The position numbers and the translations under genes were made by a program. DNA of 64,000 bases. Source: Eutreptiella sp. 'Long Island Sound 2002' (lineage: Eukaryota > Protista > Euglenida). Within the stretch, counting starts at the first letter, position 1. The number at the start of each line of letters is the position of its first letter. Below the pieces are notes generated by a model that did not search any database, was not told the DNA's origin, and worked only from the letters and a program-made list of their open reading frames with translations. The DNA lies in NCBI GenBank assembly GCA_964036045.1, contig OZ038378.1, positions 6,324,001 to 6,388,000 of the forward strand, given 5' to 3'. Positions 3,124-26,290 of this stretch are shown piece by piece.

Positions 3124-4615
3124 CGGGGCCGAACGGGGCGCTGCCCCCCCCGTCCCTTTGGGCAACGTGGCGTGACATCTCACACGACCCCCGCGCCGTG
3201 GGCGGTGGAGGGCCCCCAGGCCGTCCAGACGGACAGCACGCCAACCCCAGGTTTCCCCAGAAACCCCAGTTTGGCCCCACTGCCCCTCTTGTTCACAGTT
3301 GCAGTTGCAGCCGCGCGCTCCCGATGTTCGACTTTTACTGTGCTTTGTCAGGAGGGCAAAGGGACTTGGGCAACCAGCCAACCCCAGCCCATTCCCGGCC
3401 GACAGATCACCCGACAACACGCCGCACACCCCCGCATGCCACACCCCACGGGCTATGATCGAAGGATTATTCCGACGAAGGAGTGCACGCAGGCCCGCGG
3501 TCCCTTCGACGGAAAGAGCGCCCGAGGGGTGCGGTGTGTAGAAGGCGCTCCAAACCTCGCGGTCATTGGAATGACTGCACGCGGCGTGGGCGTGACTGCC
3601 AGGGGGGCAGGGCTGCTGCGATCCCAAGCAGTGGGGCAGGCATTCCACCCTCAACCGCAAAACCGCAACCCCCCTTTTCTACCGTTCGGTGCAGATCTGG
3701 TCGGCGCTGCGGGAGCAGTCGGGCAAAAGAATGGTGATTGTGGAGCATGGAATGGATTGAACGGAGGGAGTCTGGCATGAGGGCAGGGTCATGCCGGTGA
3801 TCTTAAAACCCGGACGTCACGGCCTTTTCCACCGTCACAAATGATGGGCCAGCAACCGCCAGTCACTCGGAAGATGCATGTGCTGCACGGTACCCAACCC
3901 GCCGTGATGGGACACCAGCCCCCCGACACACGCGGGGATGTGGCCCAGCCAGTCCCACATGGAGGGTCTGACCCAAGAGGAAGGGGGGCGTGGGAAGGGG
4001 CCGGATGGCGGCCGCAGGTCACGGTGGCCTGGGGCGTCTGGCCCCCGGCACTGCGGACCTGACATTGCTTTCCCTGACAAGCACCCAACTCCTTTGCAAT
4101 AACGCCCCAGGGCCTTGTAGGCCTCTGCCCTTTGTAACACACACACCCGCACTCACCCGCACCTGCACTTGACGGCCACTGCAGTATTCACACTTCCACA
4201 AGGGCAGGCTTCTGAAGCGGGATCGGCAACTCCCTCGGTTTCCGGACGCACACGTGTGTGTGGAGTCATGAACGGGTTTTGTTGCCTGCAGTTCTGTTCT
4301 TTGCAGGACCATGGGAGAGGCTGTTTACGATGACGGGTGCGGCTGCTGCCCACAGGGGGAGCAGTCAGCCACCAAAGTGCATCATTAACCCTATGCCCAA
4401 AAGGCACGCCTATTTTTGGGTTGTTTGCACATCAACACAGGCGCACGCACACACTGCTCTCATTGTGTTGTGCTGGGCAAATGGCCGGGAAAGGTATGAT
4501 GAGCGCAAGCCAAAAGAAGTTGTTGCGCGAACAGGTCTGTAGAGAGGTGATGGATGATAGCAAATGCCATTGTATGGTTTCCAAAATGCCTGGGCATCAC
4601 ACCCACACACCTACA

Positions 4616-5105
4616 AGGATCCCCGGCTCACTCAACCGGACTAAGCGTAGGTCTCGCAACCGTAAGGTCGTGGGATCGATCCCCGGTGAGGGCATGTCTG
4701 GAGGCGGGCGGTGGCAGCCGTGCGTCAAGGGCATCCTTTCTGTGGAAATCGCCAAATTGAGTAGGCCGTGGAGGCCGCCTCGCTGCCGCGAGCACCACCA
4801 GCTGTGAAAACCCCAATACACACACGACACACGGGGCGACATGGCGATGACGGGCTCGTTACCGTAACTATTACCGTGGAGCTGGCCCGGCGGAAGCCAC
4901 GGAGCTACCACCCCACTTCCAGGGTGGTCCTGGGGCAGCGAGCCAGGTTCTGGCCTAAGTGCATATCGCACCGGTCGAGGGGCAATACAGGGATGCACCC
5001 CTGGCCTGCACCGAAGGCCTGCTATAATGGGGAGCAACCCGACCCGAGGACGCCAGTGTGGCCATACAGGTCCAACCGGGAAGACCTGGTAAAAAACGGT
5101 ACTAC
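4616..5105 (+). mobile_element. tRNA-headed SINE-like element 1 (~490 bp) with 18-bp TSD
   Basis: Exact direct repeat CACACCCACACACCTACA at 4598-4615 and 5106-5123. The head has tRNA-like anticodon/T-arm sequence with a B-box-like GGGATCGATCCCC (~4672-4684). The body shares blocks with the element at 22063 (GCCGTGCGTCAAGGGCATCCT vs GCTGTGCGTCGAAGGCACCT). Confidence 0.75.
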
Positions 5106-5129
5106 CACACCCACACACCTACACACACA

Positions 5130-5189
5130 GGTGTTTTGTTTGGTGCCTGCCAGCTGGTGACACTGCATACCCAACCGAAAGCCAAACAG
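5130..5189 (+). ncRNA. Candidate minimal HDV-like (nested double pseudoknot) self-cleaving ribozyme, copy A
   Basis: Hand-folded. P1 5130-5135/5159-5164 opens with G.U. P2 5137-5144/5181-5188. P3 GCC/GGU 5145-5147/5156-5158. L3 UGCCAGCU. P1.1 GC/GC 5149-5150/5165-5166. J4/2 CGAAA with candidate catalytic C5176. No P4. Confidence 0.75.
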
Positions 5190-5274
5190 GCACGTACATC
5201 GGTAACCTCAACTACACGGGCGGCCCCTGGGCTGGTGCACCCCCTGCCTGGCACGACCTCACGGGTCACACAAA

Positions 5275-7095
5275 ATGTCCGCAATCACGCATGAAATTTT
5301 GGAAGCATTGCAGCGCCCGGAGCTCCTGGAAGCTCTGGCTGCTGCCCTTGCGCCACTACTCAGTGGGCGGAGCTCGCCGAAGCCGAAGCCAACGGCATCT
5401 GTCGCTGCTGCTACTCCAGCTGCAACTACAAGGGAAGAGGAGCTCCTCGGCATTATCCGGGAACTGAGAGGCACTGTCAAAGATTTGCGCGCGGCGCTGC
5501 AAGCGGCAGGAGGTACGCTTACACCCTCGAAAGCACAGGCCAATGCGGCCAAGGATGAAACCCCCTCATACCGGGAGGCGCTACAACGACGAATGAAAAC
5601 CCAAAGCAGGCTTGTCGTGCAGGATGTCCCAGACCTGGGGGAACCACTGCAGCCCACGGCGACTGCGGTGCATGAGATTGAGGGCAAATACGGCTTCACT
5701 GCGGTCCAAGGGCGCCGCATCTACCAGGGAGAGCACAAGACCGCACTCAAATCGCTGCAACAGATAGGAGCAAACAAGCCTGTCAATGATTGGAAAGTCA
5801 CAGAGGCCACGGCGAAGGCCTTCGAACACGTCTTGCTTGTGGGACAGCCGCTGGCGGAAGCGCACGCGATAGCAACACAGGCTCTAATGAAATATGACAG
5901 CATCCAGAGCGTCAGCGCACACGTGCTAGCGACGAATTGCAGACGAGGAGTGGTCAATGTGCCAGGCATTCTGGCAGCGCTTGGCAGCTCACGGGAGTGC
6001 TTACATATCAAGGATTTCATTCTCAGTATCAAGGTCGTTACCAAACGTATGTCTTGGGAAGTCAAGAGAGACCCGGGTGTGGCTGTGATCCCGCCTGAGC
6101 ATTCCATTCTGCTTTGCTGGGAACGACCCAGGGACGGAGTTGAAGGAAAGGACACGGAGCCAGAGGTTCTACCTCAGGACAAAGCCGCAATTCGGATAGT
6201 GTGCTGCTTAGACCCTTCCGTACTGCGCGCGGGACAGGACGGCACCAAAGTCAAGGCATCCCGCTGGGCTGAAAACACGTGCTGGGAGCTGACAGCCCCC
6301 CTACTCCAGCCGGCTCTCACCAGTCCCCCACCCATGCAAGTGGGCAAGAGGGGTAGCAAGTATGAAGTCACGGTGGTGCTACCAGCGCCCATGGCTAAGC
6401 AGGTGCTCTGCAGCAGTGGCAAAATCGTCGGCCTGGAATACAGGTTGTTTATGAGCAAAACCGTCGATGTCGATGACGTGAAGGCCAACATGGTCTGGGT
6501 CAAGCTCCCTCCATCCAACAAGCGCTCCATTTCGAAGCAGTGGCGCAGATTAAGCAAGCAGCCTTGGTTCGCAGGCCTCATGGCAGGGGACAAGGACGAC
6601 AGACTCGGGGTACGAGTATGGGGGGGGGCTGTCTTGCCCGAAACCAGGGAGGAGATCGCAGGACTGTTGGGCATACAACTCACCCCCCCAGTGACACGAG
6701 TGAGAGTGAGAGGCTATGGTATTTCTATGGGCCTTGTCTCAGGGTCGCAGTCTGCGGCCCAAAGGGAGGCTGACCGCGTTTTCGGCGCCAACACTGTCAA
6801 AGTGCAACGATGTCAACACCTGAAACACAGTGGGCTGATCAACCCTGTGTTTGATATGGATATTACGGGAGTCCCCCCAGACTGGGAGGGCTGCACTGCA
6901 CCGGCGAAAGATTCGCGGATGCCTGTCCGTAGGTGGCACCTATGTCTGCGTAAATCCACTGGCCCCTCATACACCCCAGTGGGGAAAAACACGACGCTCC
7001 CTGCGATCCAGGGGTGTGCCTTGCCTGATGATGAAGAAATGGAGGACTCGCCTGCAGGAGCCCCTGCGGCAGAGGAGGATGAGAGCATTCTCTGA
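5275..7095 (+). CDS. LINE ORF1 protein (606 aa), N-terminal predicted helical/coiled-coil region
   Basis: Intact ATG-TGA ORF directly upstream of the APE-RT ORF. Conserved in copy B. No CCHC knuckle recognised. Confidence 0.85.
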   Translation: MSAITHEILEALQRPELLEALAAALAPLLSGRSSPKPKPTASVAAATPAATTREEELLGIIRELRGTVKDLRAALQAAGGTLTPSKAQANAAKDETPSYREALQRRMKTQSRLVVQDVPDLGEPLQPTATAVHEIEGKYGFTAVQGRRIYQGEHKTALKSLQQIGANKPVNDWKVTEATAKAFEHVLLVGQPLAEAHAIATQALMKYDSIQSVSAHVLATNCRRGVVNVPGILAALGSSRECLHIKDFILSIKVVTKRMSWEVKRDPGVAVIPPEHSILLCWERPRDGVEGKDTEPEVLPQDKAAIRIVCCLDPSVLRAGQDGTKVKASRWAENTCWELTAPLLQPALTSPPPMQVGKRGSKYEVTVVLPAPMAKQVLCSSGKIVGLEYRLFMSKTVDVDDVKANMVWVKLPPSNKRSISKQWRRLSKQPWFAGLMAGDKDDRLGVRVWGGAVLPETREEIAGLLGIQLTPPVTRVRVRGYGISMGLVSGSQSAAQREADRVFGANTVKVQRCQHLKHSGLINPVFDMDITGVPPDWEGCTAPAKDSRMPVRRWHLCLRKSTGPSYTPVGKNTTLPAIQGCALPDDEEMEDSPAGAPAAEEDESIL

Positions 7096-7125
7096 ACCCC
7101 CCCCCCCCCTGGAAGATGGCACTGA

Positions 7126-10100
7126 GTCACAGGTCCTCTAAAATTCGTCCACACAAACGTTACCTCTTTGCGCGTTCATCACGAGGACGTATTCAATTTT
7201 CAGGCAGATGTGATTGGAATGGAAGAAACCCGGCTCACTGAGGCTGGGCAACGCTGCATGAGGGCAATTGCAAAAGATTGGGGCTGGGAATGCCACTGGG
7301 GAAAACCCCTGGGCTCCCCAACGGGGGGCATCTGGGGAGCTCCCCAAGGAGGGGTGGGACTTTTGTTCAGGAAGGGCTGGAGTGTCCGCAAGGTTGAGCC
7401 AGATCCAGACGACCCGATTGCCTGCAGGCTGTGGCATTCGGGGCGCTGGCTACACACACGGGCAGGAATCGGTGCAGGGCACTGTGTGCTGAACATATGT
7501 GTAGCCTATGGCATACCAGGCAACGAATCTTTGAACCAGGAGTTCTGGGAGCAGGTGGTCTGCTATATGAGCAAACTAGGCAATGCCGGATGCATCCTGC
7601 TAACGGACGCAAATTTCAATTTCGACCTGCTGCACAAAGTTCCTGCCGCACTCCTGACGGCGCTGGCAGACGGCTGGCTGGTGGATGCCGACCGCACTTT
7701 TAGCGTTCTCCATGGCACACCATGTGCATGTGGCTTCACGACAGCAGGCAAACCCCCCAACCGCATTGACGGCCTCCTGGTCACCCCAGCGCAAGCAGGC
7801 ACGTTGACTGATGTCACAGCGCTGAAGTCTCATTCCCTCCCTGGGCATGCTCCAGTGTGCTTCACTTTCTCGCTTGACGCCCCAATGCAGAAAGTTGTTA
7901 AAATGAAGAAACTGCCTCCTTTCTCCCCCCCCCCCAGATCAGCTGAGGACACTCAGAAAATCTGTGACTCGCTGCTCCGGCCACACAAGGCAGGTTGGAA
8001 TGCCCTGCTGCAACAAGGGAATGTCAATGACATTTGGAACAGGTGGACCTGGCTGGCCGAGGAAGTAGGCATGGCGCTCACATGCACGCATCTTACACTG
8101 GACACCCCCAGCCCCACACTCCCATTTGCACCCAAGAGTGCCCCACGGGGACGTGGCACGGAGCGAATGTTGCAGGACACTACGCTAGCTCCGACAGGCC
8201 TGGCGCCGAACGGCGGCCCACGCACGCGCATACTTTCCAAAATCACGGGGACCTTGGGAGCCCTTCGTTCGGTCATCCAGTGGCAACGTGCCCAGCTAGG
8301 CATCAGGGGCAAACGAGTCCCGGCATCCGCCAAACACAAAGCCAGCCAGGTTTTCAGGCCAGGGGTGGTGCCCAGACAGGTGGAACTATCGTGGCAGGCC
8401 GCGTGCCGCCGCATGCGCAAAACGGCGCTGGCCTTTCGTGAGGACCTGCTGCTTCATGAATTTGTGGCCAGTGCCCCTGACCCCTCCCTCCCACTCATAC
8501 GCCCCCTGCCAACGCTGGTAGACTGCATGTCGCTGTATGACAGCCTGTGCGCACTGGGGAAGAGATATGCCCGATATGAAGAGCGCACGCGCATTGATAA
8601 ATGGAAATCCAAAATGGACCAGGCCTGGCTGGACAGGCCAAAGGAGGTTTATCAGTGGATACAGAACGAGTACCAACCTCCTCTGGTTATGCTCCTGGAC
8701 CCAGACACAAGCCAACCAACGGCGAACATCCCCCGCATGGATGAAATTCTTCATGCCTCTTGGGACCAGGTTATGCGAAAATATGCAGACACCCCAGAGC
8801 CAGACGTGCACGCTTTTGCACAGAAGTATGATAAGTTTCTGATAAAGGGAGTGCAGATGCAGTCCACCCCTATCACAGGGTCTCGGCTCGCGCAACGCCT
8901 TAGAAAGATGGGTGTTCACACAGCCACCGGCCTGGATGGCTGGTGTGTTTCGGACCTACTACTGCTGCCCACCTGTCTGCTGGACATGCTGTCAGAAATT
9001 CTGTTTCTAGTTGAGGCAACAGGAACCTGGCCCAGGGTCCTGGCGAGGGGATACGTCTCGCTGATCCCGAAAGGGGAAGGGATGATGCCGATGCAGCAAC
9101 GCCCACTGTCCGTACTGTCCCAGATCTATAGGGTCTGGGCAGGGATCAGGTTAGAAGAATGCATGGTGTGGCAGGAACTGTGGATCCACCCGCACGCTTA
9201 CGGCTTTCGCAAGAAGCGCGGCGCCACTGATGCGGCCGCCTTTATCTCCATGCTCATTGAGCTACACAAACTGATGAAAGCAGTTCTGCATGGTTTTGGA
9301 TTAGACTACATAAAATGCTTCGATTTAATCCCACAATCCATTGTACTGCATATTGCACTGACGCAGGGGATGGATTTGGGCACACACAGGGCCCTCTCTG
9401 GCATGTATCGCACTCTCACAAGGTGCTTTAAAATAATGGGGTGTTTGGCCAGTTTTTTCGATGCCACCAATGGCATCCTCCAGGGCTGCCCATTGAGTGT
9501 GATACTCATCAATCTCCTGACCTCGGTCTGGAAGCGGGTGCTGGATGCACAGCAACAGGGCATCAAAGTCGCAGTACAGGCCCTCCCCCCCAGCGATCAG
9601 CCAGCGCAGGCCCTGCACTTCATCCTAACTGCCCTTGGGTATGCGGATGACACTTATGGGTTTGCAGCCGGAAGCAATACCCTCACCCCCCTGCTAGACT
9701 GCACCACTGACTGGCTTGAGGACACGGGTCAAGGGGTGAACGCGAAGAAATCTGTCGGTTTTTCGTCAGACGCCCGTCACCCAGTGAAGGCAGCATTACA
9801 GGGGGTGCCCTTCCCTATCTCTTCTGAGTTTAAGTCCCTGGGCGCGGGGGTCCGCACCACGGACGCGACTTGTTCGGGACCGCTCATCAAGAAAAGGATT
9901 TCCAGAGCCTGCAGCCTCCTGGATAGGGTGCATGGCGCTCAGGGCAATTTTGAAAGGAGATGCGACATCATCTCCACAATGATCACGGCCACTGGCCTGC
10001 ACGCAGCAGAAATAGTGCCACTTCAGCCCAGAGACCTCCTGCCCTTCGAGACTAAGGTCATGCAGACCATTTGGGGACGGTCACGGCCCGGTAGGGCCAA

Positions 10101-12236
10101 AGAAATTTTTTTCACCTTGCTGTGCAAAGGGCACCGGATTGCACCCACCCTGGTACTTAAGTATCATCGCATCCTGTGGCTATCCCAGCTGTGTCGCACC
10201 AGGGGTGCTGGACAGATCACAGCCCAGGCCATTTGGGAGATGACATCATTTCACAAAGGCTCCGGCCCATACGGCCGAGCCATGTCCACAGCACAGGAGT
10301 GTGGCTGGGTCGCTACGCAGGGATGGTGGGGATGGAAAGTGCCTGGGCGCAAGGAACCCCTCCTCCTATACGGGGATAAAAACACTATCAAGCACGAGGT
10401 GCGTGAACAGCTGCGCTCGCAAATGCTGGACAGCCTGGTTCAGAGGCGTCCCCGCCTGTTCGCGGGGGCTCATTACACCACATGCCGGCGCCTGGTCCAG
10501 CCCAGCATAGCGTCATTTGCCACAGAGCTACAGCGCTCTCTCCTGCGGGGCATCCTATCAGGAGCAACCTGGACAGCCCTCCGGGCCTATCAACGTGGCA
10601 TGCGAGCCACATCCACGTGCCCGTACTGCGGCAATGCTCCGGAAAACGAGGAGCACATTTTTTGGCAGTGTTCAGCCTGGAGCACGGTGCGGGACACCCA
10701 CCTGCCGGGCATCAGGACGGCGGCAGCACAGATCACAGGCCTTCCCCTCATGGACCAGTGGCCCTCATGTTTACGACTTTGTGGGTTAGCCCCAGAGTTA
10801 GACACAGACAGCGTCAAGTCAGGGACAGCGCTCGCATTCATGACAGCTCTGCACAATATGTTAGTAGCCGTCTTGCAGGCCCGCAAGTTACGAGACACAC
10901 AATCCCCCATGCTTTTCATGGGGTCGAGCCTCTCACAGCAGCTTCGGCAGTACCCGTACCACCAACTGGTGGGACCCCTCCCCAGACCGGAAGACAAAGG
11001 GTTACTTCTTTTGCGTACCCCTAAGAAGGTGGAATGGCAGTGGGAAATGCCCTTTTTGGCGGACCTGCTGCGCTGGCTGAGGGAACTGCACTGGGCCCCT
11101 GAACCAGGCACAGTGACGTTCTTGGAACTTGCACTGGACTTTGAGGAATTTGCGCAACGCACCCTCCCACACGCTCCACAGGCAAAATTTAAGGGCACCA
11201 CCCTTTCGCTGCAAGAGAGAGGCCGGGTCTTACGACTGGCAATGGCAAATGCGCAGCGCCTGACACCAAAGGCCATTTGCATCCGGCGCGTGTGGTCACA
11301 CGCTGCAGCTCTTTAGTTCCTTTGGGGGGGCCGGCACTCTGCGGCCTGAACTGCCGCCCTTATTTCACTTGCCGCAGTGCCATGAACATGCACGTTCAGC
11401 AGTCAGCGGCATACTGTGAGCGCACATGGGCCACCAAGGTTGGTCTCAACAGGATACACAAACTGCGCCCGCACACACACAGGCCACGCAGAACAGCGCA
11501 GGAAGTGGAGGAGCATCGGCTACAGCGTGCACTCCAGGGGAATCTGCAGTTGGGGCTGGCCCCGCCCTCGGAGCAGACCACTTTTGCCAAAGGGGGGGGG
11601 GGCTGCTCCTCCTTTGCAGCTGATTTCTTCCCTGTGATAGGGGATGGGAAGCTCCCACAGCGCCCCTACACCGGGACACGCAGGCGCGCAAACACACACA
11701 GGGGGCCACCACCGGCGCCGCCGGCTGATCCGTCAAAGTGTGCCCAGCACTCTGCTGACGCATGCACGACCTGCAAGAGATTTCGGCGCACAGCTGAAGC
11801 GTGCTGTGCGCTGGGACATCACGCTGATAACCACATAGCACGCAGACCGCAACTGCAACTGTGCCCACTGCATGGCCTGCCACCGTGCCCGAGGTGCACA
11901 CTCAAGCAAAGGGGAGTGCGCCACTGCTGTCAGCGGGGACACCATAAAGTGTGCACCCCAGTGCCTGCGCGCCGGAAACGCCCACTTGCTGCACATGCAC
12001 AACTGCCCAACAAACGACCACGCCTGCAAGGGCCTGCACGTATCTCAACGGGTCTGCTGAGGTCCCCACACCAACCCCCCACCCCTCCAGCCCCCAAGCG
12101 CAGGAGGCCGAAAACACCCCCCCCTCCGTCCCCATCTGCCCCAGTTCCACGGGGGCTGGAGGAGACCGTGGCCGAGGATGTCGCCCGCCCGCTTTTCGTG
12201 ACGAGGCACGGGAGAGCAAACACTCTGGATACTTAG
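7126..12236 (+). pseudogene. LINE ORF2 (APE endonuclease - RT - CCHC-type finger - Cys/His tail), one frameshift near 11270
   Basis: APE motifs: NVTSL, GMEETRL, TDANF, NRIDGLL, GHAPV. RT motifs: RPLSVLSQIYRVW, YGFRK, LDYIKCFD, GILQGCPLS, YADD. Finger: CPYC..ENEEHIFWQC. A 1-nt deletion versus copy B (CCTGACACC vs CCTGGTCACC) moves the C-terminus into the track ORF 11277-12236. Confidence 0.92.
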
Positions 12237-12819
12237 CCAGTAAAATACAGAGGTTCTGATTCCGCAGAAGGGAGGGAAACAACGTCACAAAGAGGCCTCA
12301 GCAGACCTGAGCCAAATGGGGCGTCCAGCCCAACGCTGCACAAGGATCCACCTCTAAAAGTACAGATCACACACCTACACACACAAGGGGGGGGGGGCTG
12401 AGGGCACCAGCATCCAAGCGCCGCAGGACCCCCCCCCCCCCAAGCTGCCGTGGCGGTTCGACACCTGACCAATTGCGGCCCGAGCTGCCTTCACTGTCGA
12501 GGAGGCCCGCAGGATACTCTAAATTAGGGACAGATGATGCCCCCTCCTCGTGGACACATAAGCGGTGCTGCCTCCCGGAGTCGCGGTTGGAACGGATGGC
12601 CGTACAAGAGCCCAGTGCACCTGACCACCTCCTTTTCGAAGAGGTTCTAGCCCAGCCGAGGGTCAAAGTGCCGGCGGCCCCATTGAAGCTGGGAGACCAT
12701 GTCCCCAGAACCAGTCGACCAGCCCCGAGTAATGGGCCTCCACACTGTGCACCCTAACCCAGAGACCCACACTGGCTTTCCTCTCTAATACAGTGCCCCC
12801 CCCCCCCCACACACACACA

Positions 12820-13340: not shown

Positions 13341-13400
13341 GGTGTTTTGTTTGGTGCCTGCCAGCTGGTGACACTGCATACCCAACCGAAAGCCAAACAG
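13341..13400 (+). ncRNA. Candidate minimal HDV-like ribozyme, copy B
   Basis: First 62 nt are identical to 5130-5191, whereas the UTR immediately downstream diverges. Candidate catalytic C at 13387. Confidence 0.75.
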
Positions 13401-13497
13401 GCGCGATCCTCGGTGACTCTGTCATCACACGGGCTGCTTCTGCCTCCCCCTGGGCTGGTGAAAACCCTGCTTGGCACGACCCCACGGGTCATACAAA

Positions 13498-15292
13498 ATG
13501 TCGGGACTTACCCATGAAATTTTGGAAGCGCTACGTAAGCCAGAGCTACTGGAAGCTCTGGCCGCAGCCATCGCACCACTTCTCAGTGGGAAGAAGGATC
13601 TACCGCCGCCGGCGAAAACGACTACTGCACGGGAAGAGGAACTCCTTGGCGTCATCCGGGAGCTACGTGGCACGGTCCGCGAGTTGCGCGCAACACTACA
13701 AGCGGCAGGGGGTAAATCGGTGCCCCCAAAGGAGCAGACCGTGGTGGACGAGCAACAGTCCCCCTATCGCGCGGCCCTCACTCGGAGGATGAAAACACAG
13801 AGCCGTCTTGTCGTACAGGATGTCCCAGACCTGGGAGAACCACTGCAGCCAACAGCCGCTGCGGTGCATGAAATTGAGGGCAAACACGGCTTTACTGCGG
13901 TCCAAGGACGCCGCATTTACCAGGGAGAGCACAAGACTGCACTCAAGTCTTTGCAACAGATAGGAGCAAACAAGCCTGTCCATGATTGGAAGGTCACAGA
14001 GGCCACCGCAAAGGCCTTCGAGCACGTTTTGCTTGTGGGGCAACCGCTGGCGGAAGCGCACGCAATAGCAGCACAGGCCTTAACAAAATATGACAGCGTC
14101 CAGAGCGTCAGCGCACACGTGCTAGCGACAAACTGCAGACGGGGAGTGGTCAATGTGCCAGGCATACTGGCAGCGCTTGGCAGTTCACGAGAATGCTTGC
14201 ATGTCAAGGATTTCGTTCTCAGCATCAAGGTCGTTACCAAACGTATGTCTTGGGAAGTCAAGAGAGACCCGGATGTGACTGTGATCCCACCTGAGCACTC
14301 CATCCTGCTTTGCTGGGAGCGACCCAAAGACGGCGTCGAAGAACAGGACACGGAGCCAGAAGTGCTACCTCAGGACAAGGCTGCCATTCGGATAGTGTGC
14401 TGCCTAGACCCTTCCGCACTGCGCGCGGGACAGGACGGCACCAAAGTCAAGGCATCCCGCTGGGCTGAAAACACGTGCTGGGAGCTGACGGCCCCCCTAC
14501 TCCAGCCGGCACTCACCAGTCCCCCACCCATGCAAGTGGGCAAGAGGGGCAGCAAGTATGAAGTCACGGTGGTGCTACCAGCGCCCATGGCTAAGCAGGT
14601 GCTCTGCAGCAGTGGCAAAGTCGTCGGCCTGGAATGCAGGTTGTTTATGAGCAAAACCATCGATGTCGATGACGTGAAGGCCAACATGGTCTGGGTCAAG
14701 CTCCCTCCATCCAACAAGCGCTCCATTTCGGAGCAGTGGCGTAGATTAAGCAAGCAGCCTTGGTTCGCAGGCCTCATGGCAGGGGACAAGGACGACAGAC
14801 TCGGGGTACGAGTATGGGGGGGGGCTGTCTTGCCCGAAACCAGGGAGGAAATCGCAGGACTGTTGGGCATACAACTCACCCCCCCCCGTGACACGAGTGA
14901 GAGTGAGAGGCTATGGTATTTCTATGGGCCTTGTCTCAGGGTCGCAGTCTGCGGCCCAAAGGGAGGCTGACCGCGTTTTCGGCGCTAACACTGTCAAAGT
15001 GCGACGATGTCAACACCTGAAGCACAGTGGGCTGATCAACCCTGTGTTTGATATGGATATTACGGGAGTCCCCCCAGACTGGGAGGGCTGCACTGCACCG
15101 GCGAAGGATTCGCGGATGCCTCTCCGTAGGTGGCACCTATGTCTGCGTAAATCCACTGGTCCCTCATACACCCCGGTGGGGAAAAACACGACGCTCCCTG
15201 CGGTCCAGGGGTGTGTCTTGCCTGATGATGAAGAAATGGAGGACTCGCCTGCAGGAGCCCCCGCGGCAGAGGAGGATGAGAGCATTCTCTGA
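13498..15292 (+). pseudogene. LINE copy B ORF1, +1 frameshift in a poly-C run at ~14879-14887
   Basis: Track ORFs 13471-14970 and 14888-15292 together match copy A ORF1. The run is C9 here versus C7A in copy A, so it may be a homopolymer sequencing error. Confidence 0.85.
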
Positions 15293-15323
15293 ACCCCCCC
15301 CCCCCTCTGGAAGATGGCACTGA

Positions 15324-18300
15324 GTTACAGGTCCTCTAAAATTCGTTCAGACAAACGTTACCTCTTTGCGCGTCCATCACGAGGACGTATTCAATTTTCA
15401 GGCAGATGTGATTGGAATGGAAGAAACCCGGCTCACTGAGGCTGGGCAACGCTGCATGAGGGCAATTGCAAAAGAATGGGGCTGGGAATGCCACTGGGGA
15501 AAACCCGTGGGCTCCCCAACGGGGGGCATCTGGGGAGCTCCCCAAGGAGGGGTGGGACTTTTGTTCAGGAAGGGCTGGAGTGTCCGCAAGGTTGAACCAG
15601 ATCCAGACGACCCAATTGCCTGCAGGCTGTGGCATTCAGGGCGCTGGCTACACACACGGGCAGGAATCGGTGCAGGGCACTGTGTGCTGAACATATGTGT
15701 GGCCTATGGCATCCCAGGCAACGAATCTTTGAACCAGGAGTTCTGGGAGCAGGTGGTCTGCTATATGAGCAAACTAGGCAATGCTGGATGCATCCGGCTA
15801 ACGGACGCAAATTTCAATTTCGACCTGCTGCACAAAGTACCTGCCGCACTCCTGACGGCGCTGGCAGACGGCTGGCTGGTGGATGCCGACCGCACTTTTA
15901 GCGTTCTCCATGGCACACCATGTGCATGTGGCTTCACGACGGCAGGCAAACCCCCCAACCGCATTGACGGCCTCCTGGTCACCCCAGCGCAAGCGGGCAC
16001 GTTGACTGATGTCACAGCGCTGAAGTCTCATTCCCTCCCTGGGCATGCTCCAGTGTGCTTCACTTTCTCGCTTGACGTCCCAATGCAGAAAGTTGTTAAA
16101 ATGAAGAAACTGCCTCCTTTCTCCCCCCCCCCCCCAGATCGGCTGAGGACACTCAGAAAATATGTGACTCGCTGCTCCGGCCACACAAGGCTGATTGGAA
16201 TGCCCTGCTGCAACAGGGAGATGTCAATGACATTTGGGACAGGTGGACCCGGCTGGCCGAGGAAGTAGGCATGGCACTCACATGCACGCATCTTACACTG
16301 GACACCCCCAACCCCACACTCCCATTTGCACCCAAGAGTGCCCCACGGGGGCGTGGCACGGAGCGAATGGTGCGGGACACTACGCTAGCACCGACAGGCC
16401 TGGCGCCCAACGGCGGCCCGCGCACGCGCATACTTTCCAAAATCACACGGACCCTGGGAGCCCTTCGCTCGGTCATCCAGTGGCAACGTGCCCAGCTGGG
16501 CATCAGGGGCAAACGAGTCCCGGCATCCGCCAAACGCAAAGCCAGCCAGGTTTTCAGGCCAGGGGTGGTGCCCAGACAGGTGGAACTATCGTGGCAGGCC
16601 GCGTGCCGCCGCATGCGCAAAACGGCGCTGGCCTTTCGTGAGGACCTGCTGCTTCATGAATTTGTGGCCAGTGCCCCTGACCCCTCCCTCCCACTCATAC
16701 GCCCCCTGCCAACGCTGGTAGACTGCATGTCGCTGTATGACAGCCTATGCGCACTAGGGAAGAGATATGCCCGCTATGAAGAGCGCACGCGCATTGATAA
16801 ATGGAAATCCAAAATGGACCAGGCCTGGCTGGACAGGCCAAAGGAGGTTTATCAGTGGATACAGAACGAGTACCAACCTCCTCTGGTTATGCTCCTGGAC
16901 CCAGACACAAGCCAACCAACGGCGAACATCCCCCGCATGGATGAAATTCTTCATGCCTCTTGGGACCAGGTTATGCGAAAATATGCAGACACCCCAGAGC
17001 CAGACGTGCACGCTTTTGCACAGAAGTATGATAAGTTTCTGATAAAGGGAGTGCAGATGCAGTCCACCCCTATCACAGGGTCCCGGCTCGCGAAACGCCT
17101 TAGAAAGATGGGTGTTCACACAGCCACCGGCCTGGATGGCTGGTGTGTTTCGGACCTTTTACTGCTGCCCACTCGTCTGCTGGACATGCTGTCAGAAATT
17201 CTGTTTCTAGTTGAGGCAACAGGAACCTGGCCCAGGGTCTTGGCGAGGGGATACGTCTCGCTGATCCCGAAAGGGGAAGGGATGATGCCGATGCAGCAGC
17301 GCCCACTGTCCGTACTGTCCCAGATCTATAGGGTCTGGGCAGGGATCAGTTTAGAGGAGTGCATGGTGTGGCAGGAACTGTGGATCCACCCGCACGCTTA
17401 CGGTTTTCGCAAGAAGCGCGGCGCCACTGATGCGGCCGCCTTTATCTCCATGCTCATTGAGCTACACAAACTGATGAAAACAGTTTTGCACGGTTTTGGA
17501 TTAGACTACATAAAATGCTTTGATTTGATCCCACAGTCCATTGTACTGCATATTGCACTGACACAGGGGATGGATTTGGGCACACACAGGGCCCTTTCTG
17601 GCATGTATCGCACCCTCACAAGGTGCTTTAAAATAATGGGCTGTTTGGCCAGTTTTTTAGATGCCACCAATGGCATCCTCCAGGGCTGCCCATTGAGTGT
17701 GATACTCATCAACCTCCTGACCTCGGTCTGGAAACAGGGCATCAAAGTCGCGGTACAGGCCCTTCCCCCCAGCGATCAGCCAGCGCAGGCCCTGCAATTT
17801 ATCCTAACTGCCCTTGGGTATGCGGATGACACTTATGGGTTTGCAGCCGGAAGCAATACCCTCACCCCCCTGCTAGACTGCACCACTGACTGGCTTGAGG
17901 ACACGGGTCAAGGGGTGAACGCGAAGAAATCTGTCGGCTTTTTGTCTGACGCCCGTCACCCAGTGAAGGCAGCACTACAGGGGGTGCCCTTCCCTATCTC
18001 TTCTGAGTTTAAGTCCCTGGGCGCGGGGGTCCGCACCACGGACGCGACTTGTTCGGGACCGCTCATCAAGAAAAGGATTTCCAGAGCCTGCAGCCTCCTG
18101 GATAGGGTGCATGGTGCTCAGGGCAATTTTGAAAGGAGATGCGACATCATCTCCACAATGATCACGGCCACTGGCCTGCACGCAGCAGAAATAGTGCCAC
18201 TTCAGCCCAAAGACCTCCTGCCCTTCGAGACTAAGGTCATGCAGACCATTTGGGGACGGTCACGGCCCGGCAGGGCCAAAGAAATCTTTTTCACCTTGCT

Positions 18301-20416
18301 GTGCAAAGGGCACCGGATTGCACCTACCTTGGTACTTAAGTATCATCGCATCTTGTGGTTATCCCAGCTGTGTCGCACCAGGGGTGCTGGACAGATCACA
18401 GCCCAAGCCATTTGGGAGATGACAACATTTCACAAAGGCTCCGGCCCATACGGCCGAGCCATGTCCACAGCACAGGAGTGTGGCTGGGTCGCTACGCAGG
18501 GATGGTGGGGATGGAAAGTGCCTGGGCGCAAGGAACCCCTCCTCCTATACGGGGATAAAAACACTATCAAGCACGAGGTGCGTGAACAGCTGCGCTCGCA
18601 AATGCTGGACAGCCTGGTTCAGAGGCGTCCCCGCCTTTTCGCGGGGGCTCATTACACCACATGCCGGCGCCTGGTCCAGCCCAGCATAGCGTCATTTGCC
18701 ACAGAGTTACAGCGCTCTATCCTGCGGGGCATCCTATCAGGAGCAACCTGGAAAGCCCTCCGGGCCTATCAACGTGGCATGAGAGCCACATCCACGTGCC
18801 CGTACTGTGGCAATGCTCCGGAAAACGAGGAGCACATTTTTTGGCAGTGTTCAGCCTGGAGTACGGTGCGGGACACCCACCTGCCGGGCATCAGGACGGC
18901 GGCAGCACAGATCACAGGCCTTCCCCTCATGGACCAGTGGCCCCCATGTTTACGACTTTGTGGATTAGCCCCAGAGTTAGACACAGACAGCGTCAAGTCA
19001 GGGACAGCGCTCGCATTCATGACAGCTCTGCACAATATGTTGGTAGCCGTCTTGCAGGCCCGCAAGTTACGAGACACACAATCCCCCATGCTTTTCATGG
19101 GGTCGAGCCTCTCACAGCAGCTTAGGCAATACCCGTACCACCAACTGGTGGGACCCCTCCCCAGACCGGAAGACAAAGGGTTACTTCTTTTGCGTACCCC
19201 TAAGAAGGTGGAATGGCAGTGGGAAATGCCCTTTTTGGCGGACCTGCTATGCTGGCTGAGGGAACTGCACTGGGCCCCTGAACCAGGCACAGTGACGTTC
19301 TTGGAACTCGCATCGGACTTTGAGGAATTTGCGCAACGCACCCTCCCACACGCTCCACAGGCAAAATTTAAGGGCACCACCCTTTCACTGCAAGAGAGAG
19401 GCCGGGTCTTACGACTGGCAATGGCAAATGCGCAGCTCCTGGTCACCAAAGGCCATTTGCATCCAGCGTGTGTGGTCACACGCTGCAGCTCTTTAGTTCC
19501 TTTGGGGGGGCCGGCACTCTGCGGCCTGAACTGCCGCCCCTATTTCACCTGCCGCAGGGCCATGAACATGCACGTTCAGCAGTTAGCGGCATACTGTGAG
19601 CGCACGTGGGCCAACAAGGTTGGTCTCAACAGAATACACAAACTGCGCCCGTACACACATAGGCCACGCAGAACAGCGCAGGAAGTGGAGGAGCATCGAC
19701 TACAGCGTGCACTCCAGGGGAATTTGCAGTTGGGGCTGGCTCCGTCCTCGGAGCAGACCACTTTTGCCAAAGGGGGGGGGGGCTGCTCCTCCTTTGCAGC
19801 TGACTTTTTCCCTGTGATAGGGGATGGGAAGCTCCCACAGCGCCCCTACACCGGGACACGCAGGCGCGCAAACACACACAGGGGGCCACCACCAGCGCCA
19901 CCGGCTGATCCGTCAAAGTGTGCCCAGCACTCTGCTGACGCATGCACGACCTGCAAGAGACTTCGGCGCACAGCTGAAGCATGCTGTGTGCTGGGACATC
20001 ACGCTGATAACCACATAGCACGCAGACCGCAACTGCAACTGTGCCCACTGCATGGCCTGCCACCGTGCCCGAGGTGCACACTCAAGCAAAGGGGAGTGCG
20101 CCACTGCTGTCAGCGGGGACACCATAAAGTGTGCACCCCAGTGCCTGCGCGCCGGAAGCGCCCACTTGCTGCACATGCACAACTGCCCCACAAACGACCA
20201 CGCCTGCAAGGGCCTGCACGTATCTCTACGGGTCTGCTGAGGTCCCCACACCAACCCCCCACCCCTCCAGCCCCCAAACGCAGGAGGCCGAAAACACCCC
20301 CCCCTCCGTCCCCACCAGCCCCAGTTCCACGGGGGCTGGAGGAGACCGTGGCCGAGGATGTCGCCCGCCCGCTTTTCGTGACGAGGCACGGGAGAGCAAA
20401 CACTCTGGATACCTAG
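15324..20416 (+). pseudogene. LINE copy B ORF2 (APE-RT), frameshift in poly-C at ~16123-16135 and a 21-nt in-frame deletion at ~17733
   Basis: Track ORFs 15366-16268 and 16271-20416. The run is C13 versus C11 in copy A. The RT reads WKQG versus WKRVLDAQQQG. The C-terminus is intact. Confidence 0.9.
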
Positions 20417-20567
20417 CCAGCAAAATACAGAGGTTCTGATTCCGCAGAAGGGAGGGAAACAACGTCACAAAGAGGCCTCAGCAGACCTGAGCCAAATGAG
20501 GCGTCCAGCCCAACGCTGCACAAGGATCCACCTCTAAAAGTACAGATCACACACACACACACACACA

Positions 20568-21770: not shown

Positions 21771-21841
21771 CCTCGGCAGACCTGAGCCAAATGGGGCGTC
21801 CAGCCCAACGCTGCACAAGGATCCACCTCTAAAAGTACAGA

Positions 21842-21842
<1 letters not shown>
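21771..21842 (+). mobile_element. 5'-truncated 72-bp 3' tail of the LINE A/B family
   Basis: CCTCGGCAGACCTGAGCC...CTCTAAAAGTACAGAT is near-identical to the last 72 nt of both LINEs. It lies between CA runs (21753-21770 and (CA)15 at 21843-21872). Confidence 0.9.
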
Positions 21843-21876
<34 letters not shown>

Positions 21877-25244: not shown

Positions 25245-26290
25245 GTACGAAGTTGGGGGCCATGGTGGTGCATATAAAGGCCGGATTCATGCCATTGTGC
25301 CATTCATTGGAAGAAAAAATGGCACTTTGACAGCCCGCCAACAATGTTACAATGACGTGCACGGGTGGTATAGGGCCATTTACGGCACGAAGTCCCCCCC
25401 CCCCCCCGTACCCTGGAGGTACGGGGGGGGGCTACGGGGGGGAGGTATGGGGGGGGGGGGGTTTGGCGGTTCGCACACAAGGCGGTGCATACACAAGGCG
25501 GTGCACACAAAAGGCGGTCTGTGGCCACCACAGGAGTCTTGTTATTTAAGGGGCCACACGCAAGGCGGTACACACACAAGGCGGTACACACACAAGGCGG
25601 GGCACACACAAGGCGGTGCACACAACACGCGGTCTGTAGCCACTGCAGGAGTCTTGTTATTTAAGCGGGGGTGCGGGGGCTGGCCCCTGCGTCGAGCGAA
25701 GCGAGGCGGGGTACGGTTACTGGGGAGATACGGGGGGGTACAGGGGGGGGTAGCCACTGCAGGAGTCTTGTTATTTAAGCGGGGGTGCGGGGGCTGGCCC
25801 CTGCGTCGAGCGAAGCGAGGCGAGGTACGGTTACTGGGGAGATACGGGGGGGTACGGGGGGGGGGGGGGTACGGGGGGGGGATACAGGGGGGGGTACAGG
25901 GGGGGCGACTTCGTGCCGACTATCGGGCACGCATTGAGCAGCTGTTTGCTCGGTTGTGGCATTATGGTTTTGTTAGGAACATCTGGCGTGGCTGCCCCAA
26001 TGAGTTGCACCAGTCAGTCCGTATTTTGTTGCATTTTACACAATTTTGCATCCGGAGGCAAGTCCGTCACCCCCCCTACGGACCATGGGAGCATGTCCCG
26101 CCTCACGTTTGGACTGACCAAAGCAACTCAGCCGCCACGCAAGATGAGGCAGAGGATGAGGCAGATGTGTGTGTGTTGTGTTGCTAGAAGCGCTCCACCG
26201 TCGCAGTTTGTGATGAGTGTAAGGAGCACTATTGTACTGAATGTATTGACACCCACGCTTGTGGGACCAATGTCGTTTGTTAAGTACAAT
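25245..26290 (+). pseudogene. PIF/Harbinger (IS5-like, DDE_Tnp_4-type) transposase C-terminal remnant, interrupted by a 544-bp insertion
   Basis: Removing 25377-25920 and one copy of the 8-bp duplication restores GAYKGRIHAIVPFIGRKNGTLTARQQCYNDVHGWYRARIEQLFARLW, the typical PF..LT..Q..YN..H...R..IE..F motif. Confidence 0.75.
25377..25920. mobile_element. G-rich MITE-like insertion with internal tandem repeats
   Basis: Inverted core CGGCACGAAGTC / GACTTCGTGCCG at the two ends. Imperfect 8-bp flanking duplication TATAGGGC (25369-25376) / TATCGGGC (25921-25928). Internal CACACAAGGCGGT units and an ~110-bp duplicated block. Confidence 0.65.

Follow-up and report, generated by a model that had tools for sequence, protein, structure and literature searches.

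We present here a predicted self-cleaving RNA at the 5' end of a LINE from an estuarine alga. The element is L1-like and targets (CA)n repeats, and from comparison of its sequence with those of its relatives we consider it likely that its first ~60 nt form a real P4-less HDV-like ribozyme fold. This reading is based on the fit of the fold, on covariation in P1, P3 and P2, on the retention of the core nucleotides and on the coincidence of the predicted cut with the boundary of a target-site duplication. The segment, referred to below as the head, is very probably a new yet ordinary case of a known device that trims element RNA to unit length. HDV-like ribozymes are a standard means by which promoter-poor LINEs leave read-through transcripts, and their presence at LINE 5' ends is established in animals (R2, R4, Dong, RTE) and in trypanosomatids (L1Tc/ingi).

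The LINE copies and their insertion boundaries

Coordinates without a prefix refer to the window, the whole stretch of 64,000 nucleotides that was analysed, in which both LINE copies, their heads and the target-site duplications lie on the + strand. LINE copy 1 (5130-12367, ~7.2 kb) is inserted in (CA)n and carries ORF1 at 5275-7095 (606 aa), for which no Pfam family was found, and ORF2 at 7168-11316, with a weak APE match, a reverse transcriptase (RVT_1) and a zf-RVT. LINE copy 2 (13341-20547) has a split ORF1 (13471-14970 and 15366-16268) and an ORF2 at 16271-20416, and the two copies are 94-98% identical across much of their length. At the N-terminus of ORF2 the match to Exo_endo_phos is weak (E = 0.04), human L1 ORF2p is the nearest solved relative of the protein (E = 8e-9), and its atlas neighbours combine APE, RT and zf-RVT. 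These features place it among the APE-type, L1-like LINEs rather than the R2-type ones; R2, R4 and Dong carry a restriction-like endonuclease at the C-terminus of one ORF, an arrangement that was not found in this LINE, which has two ORFs. Copy 1 ends without poly(A), its last bases (...AGTACAGAT) being followed directly by the duplicated CA repeat.

Copy 1 is flanked by an 18-bp target-site duplication, a (CA)n repeat with a CCTA interruption, at 5112-5129 on its 5' side and, in identical form, at 12368-12385 on its 3' side. The duplication is recognisable because CCTA interrupts the CA repeat, and it sets G5130 as the first base of the copy independently of any RNA structure. An earlier note on this DNA had claimed that the predicted cuts 5' of G5130 and of G13341 both coincide with the boundaries of such duplications. 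The 18-bp duplication bears this out for G5130, but not for G13341, since the duplication of copy 2 sits in pure CA repeat and its length cannot be fixed. The same note spoke of a tandem stack; the copies do lie head-to-tail, but in separate (CA)n tracts ~0.95 kb apart, so that the term is a loose one. The LINE is contained at low depth in two estuary metatranscriptomes. In run X1 the word depth of the head is ~9 times that of the adjoining UTR, which means that more copies have the head in common than the UTR.

A 62-nt head with the HDV topology

The head of copy 1 (5130-5191), with its predicted cut 5' of G5130, recurs without a single mismatch over 62 nt at the start of copy 2 (13341-13402), every sub-part lying at +8211, and none of 100 shuffles gave a match of this kind. 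In a UTR alignment of the two copies with a relative from a third subfamily, L001, 61 of the 62 head positions are invariant, similarity drops directly after head position ~62-65, and it recovers near the ORF1 start codon. Both the identity of the two heads and the divergence of the UTR right after them had been described in the earlier note, and both hold. The end of the conserved block coincides with the end of P2.

The pairings proposed in that note for P1, P2, P3 and P1.1 are all present as written. P1 is a 6-bp helix whose 5' strand (5130-5135) pairs with 5159-5164, its first pair being G.U. The P2 5' strand (5137-5144) pairs with 5181-5188 over 8 bp, or over 9 if U5136.G5189 is included, giving a P2 3' strand of 5181-5189. 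P3 comprises 3 bp (5145-5147 with 5156-5158) and encloses L3 (5148-5155), an 8-nt loop in which U5148 and G5153 are the equivalents of U20 and G25 of HDV. P1.1 is formed as GC/GC by G5149-C5150 with G5165-C5166, its 3' strand (5165-5166) directly following that of P1 (5159-5164). A 9-nt linker (5167-5175) replaces P4, and it is followed by J4/2, the 5-nt CGAAA at 5176-5180, with the predicted catalytic C5176. The same 62 nt also admit an alternative register with C5171, J4/2 CCAA and a 5-bp P2 (5139-5143 with 5175-5179). In the minimum-energy fold of leader plus head (region 5110-5135), ACACCU in the CCTA-interrupted leader of copy 1 pairs with AGGUGU of the P1 5' strand; this modelled pairing, missing in copy 2, would be a possible upstream inhibitor of folding.

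The chance level of the arrangement was assessed with a generic HDV-like descriptor. It required G1, helices of set length (6-7 bp for P1, 4-9 bp for P2, 3 bp for P3 and 2 bp for P1.1), a 7-8-nt L3 that begins with U and has G as its third-last base, 3-89 nt at the P4 position, and C-N-R-A(A) ahead of the 3' strand of P2. In the 128 kb made up by the two strands of the window the descriptor matched solely at 5130 and 13341, and on 48 dinucleotide shuffles (3.07 Mb) it matched once, with a 4-bp P2. As the descriptor was drafted after the candidate was known, the comparative test weighs more. If the resemblance were a product of chance in a young repeat, the two heads would be identical merely through recency, and the 94-98% identity of the window copies over much of their length would be in keeping with this. 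We give that explanation next to no credence, as the descriptor returns only ~1 false positive per 3 Mb, the adjoining UTR of the same two copies has diverged, and the head is kept, with covariation, in distant subfamilies and in other assemblies.

Folding energy and family models gave the fold no support. The nested minimum-energy fold of the 62 nt is no better than that of shuffles (z = +0.87), which is uninformative since the target is a pseudoknot; at -15 kcal/mol, the nested fold competes with the pseudoknot, which amounts to roughly -14 to -17 kcal/mol in total. Rfam returned no relevant family for the window at gathering level, for the head at E <= 10 or for five relatives, a null that weighs little because the HDV models of Rfam are narrow and without pseudoknots.

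Heads in related LINEs

Relatives were gathered from several assemblies through ORF1 searches, one degenerate pattern scan and a covariance model, which together yielded ten distinct heads in LINEs whose ORF1 identity to that of the window is 25-58%. L001 (ORF1 58%, P0006) and L011, reached via P0046 (41%), share the 62 nt of the window except at the last base of L3, where U26 is replaced by C. A head is also present in L008 and L010 (ORF1 40-41%), which come from the same genome and have decayed ORFs, in L006 (30%) and L004 (37%), each from another assembly, and in L009, a LINE with a single 2157-aa ORF that was the sole metagenome match to the degenerate pattern. This pattern had 0 matches in 596 Gb of bacterial and archaeal genomes and 0 in viral contigs. 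A covariance model built from two gapless heads, and restricted to P1 and P3, re-found all prior heads and added three more (L012:494, L005:7 and L007:524). MAFFT alignments of the heads were dropped, P1 and L3 being out of register in them, and the heads were realigned with the covariance model. Outside the head set stand L002, which is a 5'-truncated copy, and L003, which has too little upstream DNA.

Eight of the ten heads lie directly 3' of a CA-type repeat, a G being the last base before G1 in L010, and those of L005 and L007 do not. The head of the L005/L007 family (P3 CG/CG, L3 UUCACGU) is preceded by a common ...CGAACA (L007:495-523, L005:1-6), and in L007 a CA-like tract is separated from G1 by 15 nt. 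Either this family has another target or the predicted cut falls inside the element. Upstream of the L012 head (L012:440-560), ...TAATAGTACA resembles the LINE 3' terminus ...AAAAGTACAGAT; judged by this resemblance, two elements may be joined here directly, tail to head, without any intervening CA repeat. Downstream of the L012 head, an ORF1-like gene is followed by chlorophyll a/b-binding genes rather than by an RT.

Other repeats accompany the LINE copies. A very high-copy SINE-like element (4598-5123) lies directly upstream of the CA tract that hosts copy 1, and in X1 its word depth exceeds that of the LINE by a factor of 10-100. Tails of similar sequence (...GGTAAAAA[C/T]GGTAC...CA-repeat) lie at L001:2700-2760 and, with a looser fit, at L007:440-500, in each case upstream of the LINE head, and the CA-tailed ends of SINEs may be landing pads for the LINE. 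Severely 5'-truncated LINE copies occur within CA repeat at 21771-21843, where only a 70-nt 3' end is left, and at L002:2920-2990; such severe truncation is typical of abortive reverse transcription. All families have a conserved block just 5' of the ORF1 start, GGGTCA(C/T)ACAAAATG or, in distant families, CAAAATAAT (window 5250-5277 and 13480-13510; L001:2920-2942; L005:75-90; L007:585-605), and this block may be a translation-start context. Elsewhere, positions 25415-25918 hold G-rich tandem and interspersed repeats, with units such as GGAGGTACGGGGGGG and AAGGCGGTGCACACAC, together with a 114-nt tandem duplication. A search of the window with a dinoflagellate spliced-leader sequence found no match within 3 mismatches.

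Compensatory change in P1 and P3

Across the ten heads, five of the nine base pairs of P1 and P3 are altered on both sides, including four of the six in P1. Pair 2 of P1 occurs as GC, AU and CG, pair 3 as UA and CG, pair 4 as GC, CG, AU and UA, and pair 5 as CG, UA and GC, and pair 3 of P3 occurs as CG and GC; at all five of these pairs the changes are compensated. The uppermost pair of P1, pair 6, is frequently U/U. In the model-fitted alignment, paired cells amount to 88.9%, compared to 71.2% in shuffles (0/500), and 15 cells are changed on both sides, compared to 3.9 (0/500). The covariation score is 0.556 for the heads and 0.177 for shuffles (0/500), with slid-partner controls at 0.06-0.24. 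A covariance-model alignment is biased towards the structure that was modelled; a hand parse of seven heads agrees with it. The earlier note had proposed a check for covariation across genomic copies; among the ten heads, P1 and P3 do covary.

The nucleotides of the HDV core are retained as well. G1 is present in 10/10 heads, and the first pair of P1 is G.U in eight, G-C in one and G/A in one, the decayed copy L010. The core CC-U[U/G]C..G(.)-GG is retained in 8/10 heads, and L005 and L007 have a compensated CG/CG P3 instead. Every head has U1 and G6 of L3, and positions 2-3 of L3 form P1.1, which is GC/GC in five heads and a C-G plus a U.U (UC/GU) in the five others. The nested P1/P2/P3/P1.1 topology that is characteristic of HDV-like ribozymes is also found in L001, L011, L004 and L010.

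P2, J4/2 and the P4 position

Downstream of P1.1 there is a strong P2 in five lineages, its sequence being unlike in each. The window pairs UUGUUUGGU with GCCAAACAG (J4/2 CGAAA, 9-nt linker, -10.6 kcal/mol), and L012 pairs GUCUUGU with GCAAGAC (J4/2 not canonical, 9-10-nt linker, -9.0 kcal/mol). L010 pairs UGUUUUGU with GCAAAACA (J4/2 CAAG, 53-nt domain, -8.7 kcal/mol for 10 bp with duplexfold), L009 has a P2 of 8 bp (J4/2 not canonical, about 20 nt, -7.8 kcal/mol), and L004 pairs GUACUUG with UAAGUAC (J4/2 CAAA, 110-nt hairpin, -6.2 kcal/mol). The block of L010 that comprises J4/2 and the P2 3' strand is visibly homologous to that of the window, and in it G5142-C5183 is replaced by a compensated U-A. 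The 110-nt stretch of L004 is one long end-closing hairpin between P1.1 and J4/2 (z = -4.2, 0/200 shuffles). With the 9-nt linker, the 53-nt domain and the 110-nt hairpin, one LINE group thus comprises P4-less, short-P4 and long-P4 versions. The distribution of P4-less and P4-bearing heads does not track ORF1 similarity.

Among the relatives J4/2 is variable, and a clear P2 is absent from four heads. L006 retains the linker and the CGA of the window, and its P2 has two U.U mismatches and one compensated change from U-A to A-U. In L012 and L009 the P2 3' strand is preceded, at a distance of two to three nt, by a C but not by C-N-R-A, and neither a convincing P2 nor a C-N-R-A in J4/2 was found in L008 (a decayed copy), L005 or L007. 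P2 candidates by the ORF1 start of L005 and L007 were rejected; they lie inside a CAAAAU motif conserved in all families, and their registers differ. A tail-shuffle test of P2 plus J4/2, run per head, gave 39/2000 for the window, 103/2000 for L010 and 110/2000 for L004, the other heads not being significant; the match in a single head is thus only modestly significant under tail shuffling. The linker itself, AUACCCAAC (5167-5175), is identical in the window and L006 despite 30% ORF1 identity, and an ACCC/CCCA motif lies in the linker after P1.1 in all P4-less heads (window, L006, L009, L012, L005 and L007), for which no pairing partner was found. AUACC was considered as a different pairing partner for the 5' strand of P1 and ruled out, not being complementary in L012 or L009.

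The window offers two candidate catalytic Cs, C5176 and C5171, and the second belongs to the shorter register. In this register the HDV-like ribozyme would span 50 nt, with a 4-nt linker, CCAA, catalytic C5171 and a 5-bp P2, and the downstream GCCAAACA would be an alternative partner or a switch. The descriptor returns this register too, and it is only here that L006 has 5 contiguous pairs, its change of U11 to A being matched by one of A to U. However, the register is offset by one position between the window and L006, its 5-bp helix is worth -0.6 kcal/mol compared to -7.5 kcal/mol for the long P2, L010, L004 and L012 favour the long-P2 architecture, and conservation reaches position ~62 rather than 50. 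We rank it second to the long-P2 register with C5176, and regard it as highly improbable.

Several heads, as described above, have no clear P2 or no canonical J4/2, which would also fit a conserved, structured 5' element without self-cutting activity. Such an element might be an internal promoter or initiator, might bind ORF1p or the RT, or might act in translation; the only real fold would then be the P1-P3 hairpin, with P2 and J4/2 fortuitous. The near-invariance of all 62 nt, helices included, at 58% ORF1 identity points the same way, as it suggests sequence constraint beyond pairing. The Rfam null would agree with it too, and the first 77 nt of L1Tc serve as a promoter (PMC3383444). Yet a promoter role would not exclude a ribozyme, because L1Tc has both. 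Moreover, a non-cutting element would leave aside that the head matches the active site of HDV and CPEB3 by position (G1.U, 3-bp P3, L3 U1 and G6, P1.1), that P2 recurs in five lineages with unrelated sequences, plus one compensated swap, and that the conserved block stops where P2 stops. We consider such an element quite unlikely. The HDV-like double pseudoknot put forward in the earlier note is favoured by the compensation in P1 and P3, by P2 in five lineages and by the retained core nucleotides.

Proposed mechanism and excess conservation

As an HDV-like ribozyme, the head would act on the RNA of a LINE that is transcribed together with upstream DNA. The head of this RNA would fold into the nested double pseudoknot of P1, P2, P3 and P1.1, in which C5176 of J4/2 (possibly C5171, in the shorter register) would serve as the general acid and a Mg2+ ion would be positioned at the G1.U wobble and the U/G pair of L3. 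The 2'-OH of A5129 would then attack the phosphate between A5129 and G5130. This would release from read-through transcripts a unit-length LINE RNA with a 5'-OH and with exactly G5130 as its first base, which would be translated (ORF1 start at +146) and subsequently reverse-transcribed to its end. Copying of a unit-length RNA to its end would account for the common first G of full-length copies, which directly follows the target repeat in eight independent heads.

The near-invariance of all 62 nt across subfamilies at 58% ORF1 identity is nevertheless in excess of what a ribozyme needs. By analogy with Pr77/L1TcRz, the excess could reflect a second function, for example as a promoter, or an exchange of 5' ends between subfamilies. 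Going further along this analogy, we would tentatively entertain, as an unlikely possibility, that the head serves as an HDV-like ribozyme and, at the DNA level, as a promoter or protein-binding site, and that it has been spread between LINE subfamilies by 5'-end exchange. Dual coding with such exchange would explain why the head is frozen against an ORF1 that has drifted to 58%, and why the forms of P4 do not follow ORF1 similarity. On this same reading, and given a euglenid host, LINEs headed by a ribozyme would date far back among organisms whose transcription is polycistronic and trans-spliced.

Relation to known HDV-like ribozymes

Like the head, the ribozymes of R2, R4 and Dong open a target-specific LINE at its extreme 5' end, and their cut falls at the element junction; their P1 has 6-7 bp and varies in a compensatory manner, and their P3, L3 and P1.1 are highly conserved (Eickbush and Eickbush; PMC3774820). 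Those elements have a single ORF and a restriction-like endonuclease, whereas the LINE described here has two ORFs, a weak APE match, an L1 ORF2p-like RT and a zf-RVT; it belongs to an algal host and targets (CA)n, and rRNA co-transcription does not apply to it. P4 of R2 ribozymes ranges from long stems to too few nt to fold, and a 6-bp P1 with top mismatches, mismatches in P2 and an absent P4 all occur among active R2 ribozymes (PMC3774820). The statement in the earlier note that P4-less forms are known mainly from microbiome and phage data needs to be corrected, since P4-less or near P4-less forms are already found in R2 LINEs (PMC3774820). Dong is a LINE of (TAA)n microsatellites, and its HDV-like ribozyme cleaves in tests (PMC3774820). 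Thus, both the absence of P4 and the microsatellite target have precedents.

L1TcRz/Pr77 is likewise HDV-like; it takes up the first ~77 nt of an APE-type LINE whose host transcribes polycistronically, and its P1.1 and the composition of its P1 are reported to be unlike those of R2 and HDV (PMC3185411, PMC3383444, PMC4035085). The head of L1Tc is common to many element families and is also a promoter, and the excess conservation described above may be a parallel to this; a P4 is present in L1TcRz but not in the head in the window. The P1.1 of the CPEB3 ribozyme consists of one C-G pair and a U.U pair (PMC4836649). L004, L009, L012, L005 and L007 have this form of P1.1, together with a 7-nt L3, UUC(A/U)CG(U/C), whereas the head in the window has an 8-nt L3 and GC/GC. 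CPEB3 itself, a ribozyme of mammals, is intronic, single-copy, P4-bearing and unrelated to transposition.

The minimal HDV-like ribozymes from metagenomes and the theta ribozymes of gut phages resemble the head in being without P4 and ~50-60 nt long (Riccitelli 2014; 10.1101/2023.06.13.544163). Theta ribozymes adjoin phage tRNAs and process 3' trailers, whereas the head is that of a eukaryotic LINE with P4-bearing close relatives. No phage tRNA lies within a few nt of it, its position being the 5' end of a LINE, and the head pattern is absent from viral contigs. Our literature search found no paper that joins HDV-like ribozymes with dinoflagellates or euglenids. What is new here is the host, an estuarine alga, the type of LINE, which is L1-like, has two ORFs and targets (CA)n, and the occurrence of P4-less and P4-bearing forms side by side in one LINE group.

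Conclusions

On the ribozyme reading of the head, a known device would now also be at work in an estuarine alga, in a group of L1-like LINEs specific for (CA)n. Within this one group, heads with no P4, with ~50 nt at its position and with a 110-nt hairpin form a natural series that could reveal what P4 contributes, and the head would be a precise marker of full-length element starts for the annotation of a repeat-rich genome.
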